Positions 8,126 to 62,625 of a DNA stretch of 64,000 nucleotides are shown here, one piece after another. The translations under genes and the position numbers were made by a program. The notes under the pieces were generated by a model. It saw nothing but the letters and a program-made list of their open reading frames with translations. It had not been told where the DNA came from and made no database searches. The stretch is from Octopus sinensis. Lineage: Eukaryota. Numbering within the stretch: position 1 is the stretch's first letter; each line of letters opens with the position of its first letter. Location: the NCBI RefSeq assembly GCF_006345805.1, contig NC_042998.1, positions 91,016,001-91,080,000 on the forward strand. The letters are read 5' to 3'.

Positions 8126-8435
8126 TGTGTGTGTAAAAGACAAATTAGATTAGGAAAATTGAACCAAGTACAATATTATTCTCAACATGTGGAAAAAATC
8201 TTTTATCTGATCTTTTAACCGCTTACGATAAAAAACTTTGAGACGTTCAATATGCATTCTCAGGTTTCCTTACGAAATACATTCGTCAAATGAAAATCCA
8301 ATTCTTTCAAAAGTTGCTCCATTATTAACAGCAGCCACATGTGCAGTTTCAAACAATGCAGCATTTAAATTCGAAGAGAAATTTCCAGAATGCTCTATCT
8401 ATTGGTGACAGCTTGTGTTTCTCGGCTTATTATTG

Positions 8436-8993
8436 TGTAAAAGTTTTAAATTTTCATCTCACTAAATTTATCCAGCTTTTGTGTATCTAGTGCACTCTTC
8501 GCCTTGAATGTAATTATATATGAATAATATATGGCGTGTACTGGTACACCGGCGATTATAATTAATTTTATTGTATCGCATTTAACTTTGTTTACATATT
8601 CTCTCGATAAATGTTTGAGCGTTAGACGATATACCACAATTCCCTATTTTGTCGGGTATGTTCTGAGTCTGCGCAGTGTTTTGAATAGTTTAGAAAGAGC
8701 ATTTCAATAGAAGCACATGGGTCTATTAATATGGTCTTCCCATAATTAACAGGAATCTTACTGAAGAGCCAGCCTGAGTAAATAAATATTATTTTTATTA
8801 CTGAATTTGGCGAAACTGCAGTATAAGAAAAGCTAAGTTTGTAAAAGTTTTTAATTTTCATCTCACTAAATTTATCCAGCTTTTGTGTATCTAGTGCACT
8901 CTTCGCCTTGAATGTAATTATATATGAATAATATATGGCGTGTACTGGTACACCGGCGATTATAATTAATTTTATTGTATCGCATTTAACTTT

Positions 8994-8998
<5 letters not shown>
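8436..8998 (+). mobile_element. Non-LTR retrozyme family R2: ~1.4 tandem copies of a 404-bp hammerhead-containing unit
   Basis: Direct repeat with period 404 (8436 matches 8840). Homologous to the 397-bp unit at 25153-27219. Contains a type I hammerhead and ends at ttgttta|(TA)n. Confidence 0.8.
8756..8828 (+). ncRNA. Type I hammerhead ribozyme (canonical core, GUA cleavage after 8823)
   Basis: Stem I UCUUA(8756-60)/UAAGA(8824-28); CUGAAGA 8761-67; stem II GCCA/UGGC plus distal AGUAAAUAAA/UUUAUUACU; GAAAC 8812-16; UGCA loop; GUA 8821-23. Confidence 0.9.
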
Positions 8999-9298: not shown

Positions 9299-9846
9299 AC
9301 ACACACACACAGAGTCCAAGCTGTTGGTAACCAAATAATATCCAATAATAAGCCGGGAAACACAAGCTGTCACCAATAGATAGAGTATTCTGGAAATTTC
9401 TCTTCGAATTTAAATGCTGCATTGTGGCTGTTGTTAATAATGGAGCAACTTTTGAAAGAATTGGATTTTCATTTGACGAATGCGATGTATAAAGTAAACT
9501 GTGAATTTATTTTATACATCGCAAGTTAATGACTTTCCTGTGCCCGATGAGAACTCATTTTATTTTAATAACCATCACTAGTGTCACCATATATGATATA
9601 ATTACTATTATAGGTAAAATTTAGTATGTTAATAATAATTCCCCAGCGACCCCTTGGGGCTGGTACCGTCCACTTTGAGAACCTCTGCCTTAGAGTGTCA
9701 GGATAATCCGGTTGGAAACAATTGATCCACTCTTTTACACGTATATATACATGTTTAAAAGTTTACTTCTCTCTCTCTCTCTCTCCCTCCTTCTCTCTCT
9801 CCCTCCTTCTCTCTCTCCCACTCTGTCTCCTTTCCCCTCTCTCTCT

Positions 9847-14699: not shown

Positions 14700-16900
14700 A
14701 TGTGCGCGTGCCTGCGAGTATGCGCGTACGTATGTATGTGTGTGGATGTGTGAGTGTGTCTGTGTGTATGTCTGGGTGGCAGTGTGTGCGATGAATGTAT
14801 GTGAGTTGTGTATGTAGTATGTGTGCATAGATGTATGTCCGTGTGTGTGTGTGTATGTGTGTGAGTGTGTATGTATGTACGTGTGGGTGTGGGAAGTGTG
14901 TGTATGTGCATGTGTGTGTGCGTACATACAGGTGTGTGAGTGAGTGTGTGTGTGTGTATGTGTGAGTGTGTATGTATGTGTGTGTCGGATGCATGTATGT
15001 GTATGGGTGTATGTATGCGTGTGTGTATGTTGTATGTATGTGTACGTGCGTGTGTGTGTGTGTATGCGTGTAGGTGTGCGCGTGTGCATGCATGCATGTG
15101 CGTATGTGTGTGTGTGTGTGCATGTGTGTGGGTATATATGTATGTGCGTATATGTGTGTGTATGTGCGTACATGTGTGTGTGTGTGTATGCATGTGTGTG
15201 TATGTAGTGTGTGTAGGCGTGTGTGTATAGGTGTATGTATGTAAGTATGTGTGGTGTGTCCGTGTATGTGTGTGTATGTATGTGTGTGTGTGTATGTAGG
15301 TGTGTGGGCGTGTGTATATGTGTGTGTATGTAGGTGTGTGGGCGTGTGTATATAGGTGTATGTGTGTATGTCTGGGTGTGTCCGTGCATGTTGTGTGTGT
15401 GTGTGTATGCATGTGTATGTGGGTGTGTGTGTACGTGTGTAATGTATGTGTGTGTGCGTGTGTATGCGTGCGTGTGTGTATGTAGGTGCGTGTGTATGTG
15501 GTGGGGTGTAGGTGTGTGTGTGCGTGTGCGTGTGTTATGTTGGTGTGTGCGTATGTGAGTGTGAGTGTATGGGTGTTTGTCATGCATGTGTGTGCGCGTG
15601 CAGGTGAGTGTGTGTGTAAGTATGTGTGTGTGTATGTTTGTGTGAGTGTGTAAGTGTGTATGTCTTTGTGTATGTATGTGCGTATAGGAGTATGTGGGTA
15701 TGTGTGTATGTATGTATATGGGTGTGTGTATGTATGTGTGTGTGTGTGTGCATGTGTATAAGTATATGTGTGTGTGCGTATGTGTGTATATGTATATGTG
15801 TGTGTGTTTATGTATGTGTGTATGTATGTGTGTAGGCGTGTGTGTGTAGATGTATGTATGTATGGGTGTGTGTCCGTGTGTGTTTGTGTGTGTGTAGGTA
15901 GATGTGTGTGTCTGAGTGAGGGTATGGCTGTGTAGGTGTGTGTGTGTATGAATGTAAGTGTGTGTGTATACAAGTGTAATGTATGTATGTAGGTGTTGTG
16001 TGTGTGTGTATGTGTACGTGTGCGTGTGTATGTGTGTGTGTGTATGCGTGTGAGTGTGAGTGTATGGGTGTTATGTCTGTGTGTGTGTATGTCTGAAGTA
16101 GGTATGTGTGTATGTATGTATGTGTGTGTGTGTGCAGGTATGTGTGTGTATGTGTGTGTGTGAGTAGGTGTGCGTGTATGTATGTGGGTAGGGATGCATG
16201 CGAGTGTGTGGGTATGTATGCATACATACGTACGCGCACATCCGAAGCAAGCCCACACACAAAGCGCGCTCACGCACACAACGCACAAGCAGTACAACGC
16301 AAGCCCAAGGGGCCGACCAAGCCCCCAGCGCGCGCCAAGGCGCGCGAGCGCAAAGGCCCTCGAACGCCCCGCTACGCGGGAACCGAGGATCCATCAGCCA
16401 AAACCGGAAAGCAGAAAAGAGGGGGGGCTGCCTGGATGCAAAAAGGTGTATGTGTGTGTGCATTCAGTGTAAGGGTGTGCATGTGTGGGCATGTATGTAT
16501 GTATGTGCCTACATGTATGTTTGCATGTGTGTGTGTGAAGTATGTACGTGCGGTGTGTGTGTGTGTGAGTGTGTGTGTATGTATGTGCGTATGTATGTGT
16601 GTGTGTATGTGTGTATGTATGTCTGTGTGTGTGTGTGTGTGTAAGTATGTATGTGTGTGCGTATGTATGTATTGTGTGTGTATGTGCATGTTGGTTTGTA
16701 TGTTAGTGTGTGCTAGTATGTCTGTAAGTGTGTGTGATTAAATGTGTGATGTATGTATGTACGTAAATGGGTCTGCGTATGTGTGTGTGTGAACAGGCGT
16801 GTGGGAGGTAGGTGGTTGGGTGTGTGTGGGAGGTAGGTGGGTGTGTGTGTGCGTGTGGGAGGCAGGTGGGTGTGTGTGTGTGGGTGGTGTGCAAAAAAAA
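14700..16900. repeat. Long degenerate (GT/GTAT)n array inside the PLE 3' region
   Basis: About 2.2 kb of cryptic GT repeats, interrupted by a GC-rich island at 16230-16440. Source of the HTHT/CVCV ORFs. Confidence 0.9.
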
Positions 16901-21664: not shown

Positions 21665-22112
21665 AATAATCTTTTCTACTATAGGCACCAAGCCCGATAT
21701 TTGCAGGGAAGAGGACTAGTCGATTTCATCAACTCCAGTACTTTACTGGTTCTCATTTTATCGACTCCGAGAGGATGAACGACAGAATCAATCTCGGTGG
21801 AATTTTATCTCAAAATGGAAAGCTGGAAGAAATACCTATTTCTTTACTACCCACAAGGGGCTAAACACAGAGGGGACAAACAAGGACAGACAAACGGATT
21901 AAGTCTAATACATCAACCCCAGTGCGTAACTGGTACTTAATTGATCGATCCCGAAAGGATGAAAGGCAAAGTCAACTTCGGCGGAATTTGAACTCAGAAC
22001 GTAACGGCAGACGAAATACGGCTAAGCATTTCGCCCGGCGTGCTAACGTTTCTGCCAGCTCGCCGTTTAGCATTTAGTCTGGTGCGCTAATGATTCTGCC
22101 AGCTCACCGCTT
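21665..22112 (-). mobile_element. Old SINE-A interrupted by a young SINE-A (21837-22066)
   Basis: The old copy breaks at gaaatacc (21829-36) and its head resumes after the young copy (tttagcatttagtctggtgcgctaatgattctgccagctc). Confidence 0.8.
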
Positions 22113-23477
22113 GAATTAATCAGTAATAATAAAAAGCAAACAGAGAAATAAATTTATTATAACCTAGTATGTGTTTTCACCGCATGAATCACTGAATCTG
22201 TGAATGACTCATTAAGATCATTTCATGATTTAACGGAAATTTTACTTTTTTTTTAACTGGAAGACTGACAACAGTGTTAAGCTGAATCTTTCTCTGTAAA
22301 AGCTGCAGTGGCAAGGCTGCAGCTGTATTGTGCTGTAGACAGTTGTAAAACATATTGTAAAGATGGACCACTCGAGGAAAGTATTGGCGACTACACGAAT
22401 ATATTGTTTTAATCAAACAAATTATTATTGGCTGATCGGGTCGAGAAACGGTTGCAATCTATAAAAAAGAGAACGAAGCATTTAATTAGACTTCTGAAAT
22501 TATTAATTAAAAACTAAATCATAAACTCTTCGATACCACATCGACAAAATTCAGAATCACAATATATTTCTTTACTGCCCACAAGGGGCTAAACATAGAG
22601 GGGACAAACAAAGACAGACAAAGGGATTAAGTCGATTACATCGACTCCAGTGCGAAACTGGTACTTAATTTATCGACCCCGAAAGGATGAAAGGCAAAGT
22701 CGACCTCGGCGGAATTTGAATTCAGAACGTAACGACAGACGAAATACCTATTTCTTTATTACCCACAAGGAGCTAAACATAGAGGGGATAAACAAGGACA
22801 GACAAACGGATTAAGTCCAATACATCAACACCAGTGCGTAACTGGTACTTATTTAATCGACCCCGAAATGATGAAAGGCAAAGTCGACCTCGGCAGAATT
22901 TGAACTTAGAAACGTAACGGCAGACGAAATATCGCAAAGCATTTCGCCCAGCGTGCTAACGTTTCTGCCAGCTCGCCGCTTAGCATTTAGTCTGGTGCAC
23001 TAACGATTCTGCCTGCTCACCGCTTGAATTAATCAGTAATAATAAAAAGCAAACAGAGAAATAAATTTATTATAACCTAGTATGTGTTTTCACCGCATAA
23101 ATCACTGAATCTATGAATGACTCATTAAGATCATCTCATGATTTAACGGAAATTTTCCATTTTTTTTTTTAGGAAGACTGACAACAATGTTACGCTGATT
23201 CTTTCTCTGCAAAAGCTGCAGTGGCAAGGCTGCAGCTGTATTGTGCTGTAGACAGTTGTAAAACATATTGTAAAGATGGACCACTCGAGGAAAGTATTGG
23301 CGACTACGCGAATGTGTTGTTTTAATCAAACAAATTATTATTGGCTGATCGGGTCGAGAAACGGTTGCAATCTATAAAAAAGAGAACGAGACATTTGATT
23401 AGACTTCTGTAATTATTAATTAAAAACTAAATCATAAACTCTTCGATACCACATCGACAAAATTCTGAGTCATAATA
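21829..23477 (+). repeat. Tandem segmental duplication: ~735-bp copies at 21829-22564 and 22741-23477, separated by a SINE-A segment
   Basis: Near-identical blocks with offset 912-913; roughly 95% identical by eye. Confidence 0.9.
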
Positions 23478-24277: not shown

Positions 24278-25391
24278 CTAAAATATAAGATATTCTGTTA
24301 TGTCTCCGTATGTGACCGAAGGTTCACGAAAGAACATCTACATGGTCGCTCGACTTGCTTGAAATAGTTGATAAATTCCTTCAAATTACATCCTACCGGC
24401 TTAAAAAGTAAGTCCTAGATATACAAAGCTGATGTGCCTTTGATCATAGGCTCATTCAATTGCGACTGACCGAGGGCTAAACAACAATAATAACAAGAAC
24501 ATTTTAAAAGTGAAAATGTTTCTGGAGTAAGAAATTTTTAAAATTTAAAAATAACAAAGGAAAATCCATCACCAAAATTCATCTTTTATAATATCTTACT
24601 CCAAAATATATTTCGTGTACAATAGACTTAGATTTAAACCTTTCATGAGCCCTTGATGTCATAAGGCCGGATTTCAACTTGGTTTCTTTGGCATTTAAGT
24701 GACTGAGATTACAACGTTCCATCCTCGAACGGGACGAAGGTCCGGCGTAGGGTTAACTTCCTATCTACTGCTGTAACTCACTTATAGCTGAGCGGACTGC
24801 AGCAACATGAAATAAAGGGTTTTGCCCAAGGAAACTACGTTCAGTCCGGAAATCGAAACCACGATCATACGATCACGAATACAACAACCCAACCGCTACG
24901 CAACGTGCCTTTACAATGTGAGTACAATGGAGTTAAGGTAAAGTTAATACATGCCGATTTTGATTCAATTTTCTAGTGTGGCTTACTAACAGGAATGAAT
25001 TTTACGAACTAAGAATATGCTAAGATCTGTGAGGTTGACGTTGTGGGGACGGCACACTCAGTGCTGCCCTGAGTGGAACACACCCTAGCTACACCAATAT
25101 TGGTCACTAAAACTATTGTAAATAACATATATATATATATATATATATATATACTGATATATGAAAAATATATGGCTTGTGTTAGTAATACCAGCGATTA
25201 TAATTATTTTTATTTTATCGCAATTTGATTTGTTTACATATTTCTCGATAAATTATGAGCGCCAGGCGTTATACCAGAATTCCCTAGTGTTGTCGGGACG
25301 TTCGGAGTCTGCGCAGTGATATGATTAGTTAGGAAGAGTAAATCATTAGACGCACATGCTTCTAGTGAGTTAGGATCCCAGAAAAACAGGG

Positions 25392-25463
25392 TCTCACTGA
25401 AGAATTCTCCCTGGGCAAATAAATTATCTTTATTGCTGAAAAGAAAGAAACTGCAGTCTGAGA
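25392..25463 (+). ncRNA. Type I hammerhead, unit 1 (GUC cleavage after 25458)
   Basis: UCUCA / CUGAAGA (25397-403) / stem II / GAAAC (25447-51) / UGCA / GUC / UGAGA. Confidence 0.85.
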
Positions 25464-25788
25464 ATTTACCGGTTTAGTAAATGTTTTTATCTTCATTTCA
25501 CTTAATTTATCAAGCTTCTGTATTCCTAGCACATATTTCGCCTTAATGTACTGATATATGAAAAATATATGGCTTGTGTTAGTAATACCAGCGATTATAA
25601 TTATTTTTATTTTATCGCAATTTGATTTGTTTACATATTTCTCGATAAATTATGAGCGCCAGGCGTTATACCAGAATTCCCTAGTGTTGTCGGGACGTTC
25701 GGAGTCTGCGCAGTGATATGATTAGTTAGGAAGAGTAAATCATTAGACGCACATGCTTCTAGTGAGTTAGGATCCCAGAAAAACAGGG

Positions 25789-25860
25789 TCTCACTGAAGA
25801 ATTCTCCCTGGGCAAATAAATTATCTTTATTGCTGAAAAGAAAGAAACTGCAGTCTGAGA
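25789..25860 (+). ncRNA. Type I hammerhead, unit 2 (cleavage after 25855)
   Basis: Identical motif; CUGAAGA at 25794. Confidence 0.85.
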
Positions 25861-26183
25861 ATTTACCGGTTTAGTAAATGTTTTTATCTTCATTTCACTT
25901 AATTTATCAAGCTTCTGTATTCCTAGCACATATTTCGCCTTAATGTACTGATATATGAAAAATATATGGCTTGTTTAGTAATACCAGCGATTATAATTAT
26001 TTTTATTTTATCGCAATTTGATTTGTTTACATATTCTCGATAAATTATGAGCGCCAGGCGTTATACCAGAATTCCCTAGTGTTGTCGGGACGTTCGGAGT
26101 CTGCGCAGTGATATGATTAGTTAGGAAGAGTAAATCATTAGACGCACATGCTTCTAGTGAGTTAGGATCCCAGAAAAACAGGG

Positions 26184-26255
26184 TCTCACTGAAGAATTCT
26201 CCCTGGGCAAATAAATTATCTTTATTGCTGAAAAGAAAGAAACTGCAGTCTGAGA
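26184..26255 (+). ncRNA. Type I hammerhead, unit 3 (cleavage after 26250)
   Basis: Identical motif; CUGAAGA at 26189. Confidence 0.85.
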
Positions 26256-26578
26256 ATTTACCGGTTAGTAAATGTTTTTATCTTCATTTCACTTAATTTA
26301 TCAAGCTTCTGTATTCCTAGCACATATTTCGCCTTAATGTACTGATATATGAAAAATATATGGCTTGTGTTAGTAATACCAGCGATTATAATTATTTTTA
26401 TTTTATCGCAATTTGATTTGTTTACATATTCTCGATAAATTATGAGCGCCAGGCGTTATACCAGAATTCCCTAGTGTTGTCGGGACGTTCGGAGTCTGCG
26501 CAGTGATATGATTAGTTAGGAAGAGTAAATCATTAGACGCACATGCTTCTAGTGAGTTAGGATCCCAGAAAAACAGGG

Positions 26579-26649
26579 TCTCACTGAAGAATTCTCCCTG
26601 GGCAAATAATTATCTTTATTGCTGAAAAGAAAGAAACTGCAGTCTGAGA
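26579..26649 (+). ncRNA. Type I hammerhead, unit 4 (cleavage after 26644)
   Basis: CUGAAGA at 26584; 1-nt deletion in distal stem II. Confidence 0.83.
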
Positions 26650-26974
26650 ATTTACCGGTTTAGTAAATGTTTTTATCTTCATTTCACTTAATTTATCAAG
26701 CTTCTGTATTCCTAGCACATATTTCGCCTTAATGTACTGATATATGAAAAATATATGGCTTGTGTTAGTAATACCAGCGATTATAATTATTTTTATTTTA
26801 TCGCAATTTGATTTGTTTACATATTTCTCGATAAATTATGAGCGCCAGGCGTTATACCAGAATTCCCTAGTGTTGTCGGGACGTTCGGAGTCTGCGCAGT
26901 GATATGATTAGTTAGGAAGAGTAAATCATTAGACGCACATGCTTCTAGTGAGTTAGGATCCCAGAAAAACAGGG

Positions 26975-27051
26975 TCTCACTGAAGAATTCTCCCTGGGCA
27001 AATAAGTTATCTTTATTGCTGAAAAGAAAAGAAAGAAACTGCAGTCTGAGA
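26975..27051 (+). ncRNA. Type I hammerhead, unit 5 (cleavage after 27046)
   Basis: CUGAAGA at 26980; extra gaaaa in the 3' side of stem II. Confidence 0.8.
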
Positions 27052-27267
27052 ATTACCGGTTTAGTAAATGTTTTTATCTTCATTTCACTTAATTTATCAA
27101 GCTTCTGTATTCCTAGCACATATTTCGCTTAATGTACTGATATATGAAAAATATATGGCTTGTGTTAGTAATACCAGCGATTATAATTATTTTTATTTTA
27201 TCGCAATTTGATTTGTTTATATATATATAATATATATATATATAGATATATATATATATATATATAT

Positions 27268-27314
<47 letters not shown>

Positions 27315-27478
27315 ATATAATATATGTATGTATATATATAATGTATGTATATATATATATGTATGTATATATATATGTATGTATATATATATATTATGTA
27401 TGTATGTATGTATTAAAAGTCAGGGTTGGATTATGTTTGCTGTCCACTTTATCATTTGAATAACTTATTTGAATTTTG

Positions 27479-27587
<109 letters not shown>

Positions 27588-27652
27588 ATACATATATATA
27601 CGGACATATACTTGCATAGCAAATGACCTGATCTGAGATCGTGTGCTGATAT

Positions 27653-27721
<69 letters not shown>

Positions 27722-28107
27722 CACATATATATATATATTCTTTTATTCTATTGTGTCTGGGGAGATCATTTTCTTTTTGTGCCTTATAATTTAACACACT
27801 CAGTCACGTTATCTACTCTTATAGGTGTCAGCTATACTTTTCAGTTGGGTGTAGTACATATCAGTGTAAGACGGCAAATTGGCAGAAACAACAGAACATT
27901 GGATTACATGTCTTTACAATATTATTTACTTTAGTTTCTGTATATTATACCATACAATACTGAATCTGAAGTGCAAATCTCAAATCTGGAATGCATTATC
28001 CTTGTAAATCAGTCCAAGTCATTACGAATTGGTTGCATCATCAAGTGTTTGTTTTTCTAAAGATTTTTTCATAACAAAGATCAATATTTCATGCTTTTTT
28101 TTCTAAC

Positions 28108-62029: not shown

Positions 62030-62255
62030 CTGCAAAACTTACAATGACGTCAATTACTACTTATGACTATTGGTGTGTATAAAGTCAATGATTATTGTAT
62101 GCGAATTTCTTACGTCATCACTTCATGTGAATTAATGGGTCTGATAATGAAATGATCAAATAAATTGCGGTCACTTAGAAAGTCTGATGATATGGGCACA
62201 GAGTTTTATTATAAATATGATAATTTTTTATATTAATTTTCTTCTTGCCTTATCT

Positions 62256-62625
<370 letters not shown>

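Follow-up and report, generated by a model that had tools for sequence, protein, structure and literature searches.

Retrozymes of the non-LTR type have been defined in metazoans such as coral, mussel and axolotl (Cervera & de la Pena 2020, PMC7229834). In the sections of that report from which we take the definition, they are head-to-tail repeats of 150–450-bp units that each carry one type I hammerhead ribozyme. They are low in G+C, non-coding and free of LTRs (long terminal repeats), primer-binding sites (PBS) and polypurine tracts (PPT), and they occur as many dispersed arrays, from dimers to large multimers, with target duplications of more than 4 bp. Here we describe a tandem array of ~395-nt units in a 64,000-nt stretch of the Octopus sinensis genome (NCBI RefSeq assembly GCF_006345805.1, contig NC_042998.1, positions 91,016,001 to 91,080,000, forward strand; hereafter the window). 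Judged from its genomic sequence, the array belongs to a new cephalopod family of this known animal class, sharing with it all the genomic features that define metazoan non-LTR retrozymes; a literature search found no cephalopod retrozyme family. The array itself very probably represents a single, young insertion of a tandem retroelement that is non-coding and non-autonomous and belongs to the non-LTR retrozyme type of animals.

The octopus family departs from the families described in the same sections of PMC7229834 in its cephalopod host, in a helix II that is 43–44 nt long and interrupted, and in an A.A apposition at positions 10.1/11.1 in the octopus subfamily. Expression as linear and circular RNA is a property of those families, whereas the octopus family is known here from the genome assembly. 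Conversely, the fixed internal 3′ terminus and (TA)n target of the octopus family are not among the features that these sections describe for metazoan retrozymes. The metazoan type I hammerheads treated there have a short helix I, a large helix II, a short helix III with a palindromic loop and poor activity as single motifs, but are active as dimers in tandem repeats.

A comparable geometry is found in the minimal, dimeric hammerheads that Penelope-like elements carry (Cervera & de la Pena 2014, PMC4209133). They resemble the octopus motif in that helix I has 4–5 bp, helix II exceeds the usual size and helix III, small and palindromic, permits pairing into a double hammerhead; as single motifs they are expected to have low activity (PMC4209133). 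The octopus motif, in contrast, lies outside the pseudo-LTR of a coding element. Plant LTR retrozymes are likewise non-autonomous, hammerhead-bearing and thought to move through circular RNA, but they carry type III hammerheads in LTRs, have a PBS and a PPT, produce 4-bp target duplications, are high in G+C and are mobilized by Gypsy elements. Amphibian satellite 2 and the axolotl motifs HHR_Amex1 and HHR_Amex2 are unrelated in sequence to the octopus family. In the amphibian motifs the helix II hairpins are short and contacts between loops 1 and 2 are conserved; such contacts were not identified in the octopus motif.

Architecture of the array

Tandem Repeats Finder, run on the 64-kb window, reports a tandem array at 25152–27224 with a period of 395, 5.2 copies, 98% matches and a score of 4038. 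This agrees with an earlier note on this DNA, which had placed ~5.2 near-identical tandem units at 25153–27219, and the end given there, 27219, is exactly the conserved 3′ terminus of the element. The locus comprises the following features.

25152..27219, + strand: retrozyme-like element, read as one insertion, with a ~395-nt unit (Tandem Repeats Finder and blastn of one unit against the locus)
25127..25153, no strand: (AT)13 on the 5′ side of the array, the remainder of the (TA)n target
27218..27738, no strand: imperfect (TA)n, ~520 bp long, that follows the array on its 3′ side, the target microsatellite
27203..27219, + strand: conserved 3′ terminus (...GATTTGTTTA), ~173–177 nt downstream of the last predicted cut; the common end in 18–20 of 21 family loci, in 4 sister-family loci and in a second copy in the window

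The element is made up of a first unit that is truncated at its 5′ end (starting from unit position ~88–90), four full units and a partial last unit that stops at the fixed 3′ terminus of the family. In the internal units, the sequence past the position of this terminus runs on as CATATTTCTCGATAAA. The unit has a G+C content of 34.8%, the longest ATG-initiated open reading frame (ORF) in a trimer spans 52 codons, and a Pfam search of five ORFs from the window returned no domain. Arrays of the family are flanked by (TA)n or unique DNA without terminal repeats, and no LTR, PBS or PPT was found, in keeping with the low-G+C, non-coding character of retrozymes. Substitution divergence is 0.13% among the four full units of the window array, as against ~1.6% between arrays, and the insertion in the window is therefore recent.

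A hammerhead motif in each unit

The core pattern CTGANGA-N30-55-GAAAC-N2-8-GTC matches five times in the window, always on the + strand, with matches ending at 25458, 25855, 26250, 26644 and 27046. The chance expectation is 0.07 matches per window, and none of 100 shuffles reaches five. The cuts that had been predicted earlier lie directly after these same positions, and successive predicted cuts are spaced by the 397, 395, 394 and 402 nt that had been given as monomer lengths. Each unit reads UCUCA-CUGAAGA-(43 nt)-GAAAC-UGCA-GUC-UGAGA on the + strand. A pattern with a shorter gap (4–34 nt) misses the motif in the window because helix II spans 43 nt. The five motifs, each listed from the 5′ strand to the 3′ strand of helix I, are as follows.

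25392..25463, + strand: hammerhead motif 1, predicted cut after 25458 (pattern; 68.2 bits with a model of the sister family described below)
25789..25860, + strand: hammerhead motif 2, predicted cut after 25855 (pattern and sister-family model)
26184..26255, + strand: hammerhead motif 3, predicted cut after 26250 (pattern and sister-family model)
26579..26649, + strand: hammerhead motif 4, predicted cut after 26644, with the distal helix II arm shorter by one A (pattern and sister-family model)
26975..27051, + strand: hammerhead motif 5, predicted cut after 27046, with a 5-nt AGAAA duplication in the region of the helix II 3′ strand (pattern; 56.6 bits with the sister-family model)

The type I core (C3 U4 G5 A6 N7 G8 A9, G12 A13 A14, A15.1-U16.1, H17) is complete in all five units, as CUGAAGA ... 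GAAA-C-UGCA-G-UC. Among motif-positive copies, N7 is the only core position that varies in the family (A, U or C, and G in one contig of sequencing run X6), a count that is circular in that the search pattern required the core. Helix I, UCUCA/UGAGA, has 5 bp and lies directly 5′ of C3 and directly 3′ of the predicted cut in every unit. Helix II, formed from the 43 nt between CUGAAGA and GAAAC, is long and interrupted. Helix III is reduced to a single C-G pair atop A15.1-U16.1 with a UGCA cap, and ACUGCAGU is a perfect 8-nt palindrome.

Dispersal and insertion footprints

Comparison of one unit with the 2.72-Gb assembly, a search for dispersed arrays that had been proposed earlier, returned 761 first-look candidates. 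Scoring of 38 of these gave 196 matches at 97–100% identity in ~38 places, with at least 38 arrays distributed over most chromosome-scale contigs. A stricter motif pattern recovers 540 intact copies genome-wide, as against 1 for a control pattern, and the arrays range in size from 1 to ~28 units.

We mapped the ends of the window array and of 20 further fetched arrays (21 loci in all), together with those of 5 arrays from sister and third lineages (21+5). The 3′ end falls at unit position 175–180, counted from the predicted cut, in 18 of the 21 loci, and two more alignments reach 192 and 195 inside the (TA)n. It reads ...TTTGTTTA, ~177 nt past the predicted cut, and then passes into (TA)n. The 5′ ends, by contrast with this fixed 3′ end, are scattered (unit positions 1, 20, 54, 58, 61, 88, 96, 104, 109, 162, 203, 238, 243, 253, 254, 286, 331, 356 and 358). 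On the 3′ side, (TA)n flanks the array in 20 of the 21 loci, and on the 5′ side 15 loci have a TA-rich flank. At one locus (L044), a ~17-bp sequence, TATATATATGTATGCTG, immediately precedes the element and recurs immediately past its GTTTA end, forming a target-site duplication with interrupted (TA)n on both sides. In most loci any duplication would be hidden by the (TA)n target. A fixed 3′ end combined with variable 5′ truncation reads as the footprint of target-primed reverse transcription.

The suggestion in the earlier note that this apparent satellite is a recent retrozyme insertion is upheld by the dispersal at 97–100% identity, by the fixed 3′ and variable 5′ ends in (TA)n, by the one target duplication and by the divergence of 0.13%.

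A separate observation concerns the only array among the 21 without the usual 3′ terminus (L045, G000:C3:29734031-29734762). It stops one base before the predicted cut (…ACTGCAGT) and is followed by unrelated sequence, and its unit has a mutated core, CCGAAGA.

Related lineages and covariation

The genome-wide pattern search also uncovered a sister family with an identical core and helix III and with G-CCUA...UAGG-C at the base of helix II. Its units are 399–404 nt long and 82–83% identical to those of the window family over their whole length, and they likewise end in GTTTA+(TA)n and are variably truncated on the 5′ side (4 loci with the common end). The best conserved region of the unit between the two families is the 161–200 bin around the 3′ terminus (90%, with 24 invariant nt), and the conserved block there reads TTTGTTTACATATTTCTCGATAAA. 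A third lineage is represented in the window itself.

8436..8998, + strand: older insertion of a related lineage, 1.4 units, 5′-truncated at unit position ~18, with a GTTTA+(TA)n 3′ end; ~84% identical to the sister family
8756–8828, + strand: third-lineage hammerhead whose helix II base is G-CCAG/UUGG-C and whose cleavage triplet is GUA; 102.8 bits with the sister-family model

Numbered from the invariant core, and so independently of any alignment, the pairs that differ compare as follows.

Helix I pair 2: C-G in the window family, U-A in the sister family, U-A in the third lineage
10.1/11.1: A.A in the window family, G-C in the sister family, G-C in the third lineage
10.2/11.2: U-A in the window family, C-G in the sister family, C-G in the third lineage
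10.3/11.3: U-A in the window family, C-G in the sister family, C-G in the third lineage
10.4/11.4: C-G in the window family, U-A in the sister family, A-U in the third lineage
10.5/11.5: U-A in the window family, A-U in the sister family, G.U in the third lineage

One sister copy holds the U.G intermediate at helix I pair 2. We used this core-anchored numbering and a model-based alignment because MAFFT misplaced the single gap in helix II. The formal count on the model-based alignment took in 43 motifs, of which 24 are distinct, and gave pairing in 93% of cells, compared with 41–45% when the partners are slid by 1–3 columns. Seven pairs have two-sided changes, including all five basal pairs of helix II, and such changes occupy 25 cells, against 5.7 in shuffles (0 of 500 reach the observed value). 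The Rfam model Hammerhead_1 matches the sister motif over its full length with 30.6 bits (E 1.4e-4), under the RF00163 gathering threshold of 34; canonical hammerheads elsewhere in the genome do score in Rfam.

Because helices I and II have been maintained in three diverged lineages by two-sided pair changes, the comparison indicates that the hammerhead fold was under selection in the superfamily and identifies the window motif as a true homologue of that fold. The type I hammerhead proposed in the earlier note thus stands at the level of the superfamily, on the two-sided pair changes relative to the 82% identical sister and on the Rfam match of that sister; the window family's own motif is without an Rfam match at E ≤ 10.

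The older copy in the window lies, together with its (TA)n and ~300 nt of other sequence, within an inverted repeat (8238–8435 and 9343–9524) whose arms of ~190 nt are 82–98% complementary. The left arm abuts the 5′ end of the older insertion. This inverted repeat could be a foldback or terminal-inverted-repeat element that was hit, or an inverted target duplication.

Contrary evidence and predicted ribozyme activity

Several observations weigh against reading the array as a hammerhead-bearing retrozyme. Positions 10.1/11.1, where a Watson–Crick pair, usually G-C, is looked for, are A.A in the window family, and the four remaining basal pairs are mostly A-U. That the base of stem II (A-UUCU/AGAA-A) is imperfect had been given as a caveat beforehand; the A.A can be read directly in the sequence and is the main weakness of the case. 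Rfam gives no hammerhead for the window family, either at the gathering score in the window or at E ≤ 10 in 25000–27400, and its output in these searches consists only of microsatellite-driven miRNA noise. Folding of the monomer, which had been suggested as a check, does not favour the motif: the hammerhead fold is not the predicted minimum in contexts of 111–126 nt (−9.2 versus −19.6 kcal/mol for 111–118 nt), a competing 8-bp helix, GAAUUCUC/GAGAAUUU, is preferred over it, and the whole unit folds no better than shuffles (z = −0.52), as does the domain.

The covariation comes from three lineages only and few independent events, and the alignment that underlies the formal count, unlike the core-anchored table, had been fitted to the structure. 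The enrichment of core conservation across genomic copies to which the earlier note had looked does not appear, as per-column variation across 82 genomic units reveals no extra conservation of the core. For dead-on-arrival copies such a result is expected and uninformative, yet it gives no support. Comparison of the unit by blastn with 8 GIY-YIG loci (±1.5 kb) and 10 canonical-hammerhead loci, a tiny sample of more than 5000 candidates, returned only an 18-nt chance match. The unit showed no sequence similarity to the sampled loci that encode a reverse transcriptase with a GIY-YIG domain (RT+GIY-YIG) or to the canonical GUAC-CUGAAGAG-ACCC... hammerheads of the octopus genome.

Contigs of four sequencing runs, filed under four organism labels, belong here as well. 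They contain the unit at ~98–99% identity, as cyclic contigs of 426–428 nt with a 395-nt joint at which the sequence ‘goes back’ on itself. Tandem DNA gives the same picture, and the four runs also contain the GTTTA+(TA)n junction. Because they hold this junction, and because one contig ends in a transposase adapter, the runs are probably DNA. The family occurs in nearly identical form in samples filed under several organism labels, and the major form in run X8 has CUGAUGA, which is that of the subfamily with the ~28-unit array in this genome. The contig of run X16, placed at window position 25872, ends in CTGTCTCTTATACACATC, which we take to be a transposase (Nextera-type) adapter; run X16 is a tagmentation library whose adapter was left untrimmed before assembly.

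For two 72-nt domains taken together, the minimum free energy structure given by RNAcofold is a double hammerhead, at −28.5 kcal/mol versus 2 × −11.9 (−23.8) kcal/mol for separate monomers. The predicted double hammerhead has an intermolecular helix III of 8 bp, and each core faces the cut site of the other copy. The closest precedent for the octopus A.A, in the part of PMC7229834 that treats the axolotl motifs, is HHR_Amex2, whose helix II base holds a U.U mismatch and which nevertheless cleaves, if weakly. The A.A therefore does not exclude activity, but predicts a slow ribozyme. Because G10.1-C11.1 is replaced by A.A and a competing 8-bp helix exists, the hammerhead of the A.A subfamily is probably slow or conditional, and we treat its cutting as a prediction.

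Homogeneity of arrays and proposed copying mechanism

Units within an array resemble each other in ways that bear on how they were copied. Five of 18 informative sites (those with the minor allele seen at least twice) are monomorphic within every array, compared with 0.00 for 1000 shuffles. In the window array, all four full units carry a variant, at unit position 207, that is private to it, and each of the six motifs of the C1:208432154 array has the same change, found nowhere else in the motif list. A change that arose one time and now stands in every unit needs a step from one monomer to a multimer, and rolling-circle copying supplies such a step. Arrays run through the predicted cut and their 3′ end is internal to the monomer; the template would therefore be an uncut multimer or a religated circle. 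The insertion junction reads GTTTA-TATAT, as compared with GTTTA-CATAT in internal units, and two loci retain CATAT or CGTAT. Priming by (TA)n on UACAUAU with one mismatch would yield exactly the GTTTA-TATAT junction.

We propose that transcripts of the array would be cut between GUC and U into unit-length RNAs, probably by two neighbouring motifs paired through the palindrome ACUGCAGU as a double hammerhead, and that the monomers would be circularized by a host RNA ligase. A nicked (TA)n target could then anneal to the UACAUAU of the RNA and prime a reverse transcriptase, which would copy the circle repeatedly and so generate internally homogeneous arrays of variable length. The enzyme would most likely come from a Penelope-like element, as the targets are (TA)n and open RT+GIY-YIG frames abound. 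Tentatively, we suggest a more specific version of this mechanism as a possibility: rolling-circle reverse transcription of the circular unit may always start, through microhomology to a nicked (TA)n target, from the one internal site, UACAUAU, ~177 nt beyond the predicted cut, and continue for up to ~28 rounds across the religated cut, with the A.A and the competing helix of the most prolific subfamily acting as a conformational switch that permits cutting as a double hammerhead in multimers and keeps the ribozyme silent in the circle.

The same retroelement might instead be copied without a circle. Read-through RNA ending in (UA)n would anneal to nicked (TA)n and the linear multimer would be copied with truncation at the 5′ end, in which case the hammerhead of the A.A subfamily would be an inherited and largely inactive relic, as cutting would destroy the template. 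The (TA)n that follows every array would indeed provide read-through RNA with a (UA)n tail, and the weak ribozyme suggested by the A.A mismatch, the absent Rfam match and the competing helix belongs to the most prolific subfamily. However, array-private variants present in all units (the five concordant sites versus 0.00 in shuffles, and the window variant in 4 of 4) need the monomer-to-multimer step, the preservation of helices I and II by two-sided changes argues for a ribozyme fold under selection, and the duplication of interrupted (TA)n on both sides of the L044 element marks (TA)n as a target and not only a tail. We regard copying without a circle as unlikely.

Candidate mobilizer

For the reading of the array as a retrozyme insertion, we infer mobilization by a Penelope-like element from co-occurrence and from the style of insertion. 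The genome holds 5029 first-look GIY-YIG candidates, many with open frames of 780–883 codons, and the two loci examined encode RVT_1 with a GIY-YIG domain C-terminal to it, the architecture that is canonical for Penelope-like elements. Some Penelope-like clades are reported to prefer (TA)n as their target (PMC8557442), and a 2026 preprint makes the case that the pseudo-LTRs of Penelope-like elements are the source of animal retrozymes. In the 400 nt downstream of the RT+GIY-YIG frames, two loci (L071 and L072) have in common a low-complexity stretch rich in CCACCAC and CTGCTGC, in which a simple pattern search detected no hammerhead motif.

Reverse transcriptases of the long interspersed nuclear element (LINE) type, with an apurinic/apyrimidinic or restriction-like endonuclease, might also serve as the mobilizer, in which case the element would be a tandem parasite of a LINE, resembling a short interspersed nuclear element (SINE) and having a 3′ end of the microsatellite type. 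LINE/SINE pairs, too, typically show a fixed 3′ end, truncation on the 5′ side and an AT-rich target, and the unit lacks similarity to the sampled Penelope-like loci. We nevertheless consider this highly improbable: head-to-tail multimers, hammerheads with a palindromic helix III and a preference for (TA)n are published hallmarks of Penelope-like elements and retrozymes, and open RT+GIY-YIG frames are very abundant in this genome, although no search aimed at a LINE with the shared 3′ end was made.

An ordinary satellite shaped by unequal crossing-over, with a hammerhead-like string by chance, would suit the lack of an Rfam match for the window family and the unremarkable folding of the unit but can be dismissed in view of dozens of short arrays, spread over most chromosomes, whose 3′ ends coincide while their 5′ ends vary and among which a target duplication occurs, of a core and two-sided pair changes kept in an 82% identical sister that Rfam recognizes, and of 540 matches versus 1 for the control; satellite DNA as such, with long arrays at few loci and no insertion boundaries, is ruled out by the short arrays (1 to ~28 units), the many loci and the defined ends.

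Other repeats

Two Rfam-positive canonical type I hammerheads (L036 and L037, G000:C16:25146363 and 25146794) lie 431 bp apart in a direct repeat of 96% identity. Their motif is GUAU-CUGAAGAG-ACCC...GGGUC-GAAAC-AUGU-GUC, and they form a tandem hammerhead family that is unrelated in sequence to the ~395-nt family. A further Hammerhead_1 match in Rfam (L038, G000:C5:69975879-69975986; 34 bits) spans 108 nt owing to an insertion of ~66 nt in helix II, and its helix III is the palindrome ACGAUCGU; the ~395-nt family is thus not alone in having a long helix II. Around one canonical hammerhead locus (L034, 636–1830) there is a 1.2-kb inverted duplication that resembles a perfect palindrome (99%), a head-to-head layout as described for Penelope-like insertions.

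Elsewhere in the window, a 184-bp unit occurs twice at 22565–22931 (89%), between two-copy 44-bp repeats of one related sequence (22025–22109 and 22938–23025); the whole region, 22025–23025, looks like a composite repeat or a SINE-like structure. An imperfect (TG)n-type microsatellite of 1.45 kb at 14733–16186 creates a spurious ORF of 677 codons, and a (CTA)125 array occupies 62254–62625.

Implications

How the recently defined animal retrozymes are copied is still argued. The footprints described here (a fixed internal 3′ terminus, (TA)n targets, 5′ truncation and array-wide private variants) are relevant to the choice between a circular and a linear multimeric template, and to the identity of the copying enzyme. 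The sister family and the window family, with G-C or A.A at 10.1/11.1 and fully compensated neighbours, provide a natural ribozyme pair for a test of how much activity is needed for retrozyme spread. For genome annotation, the finding shows that such ‘satellites’ in cephalopod assemblies are young mobile elements.

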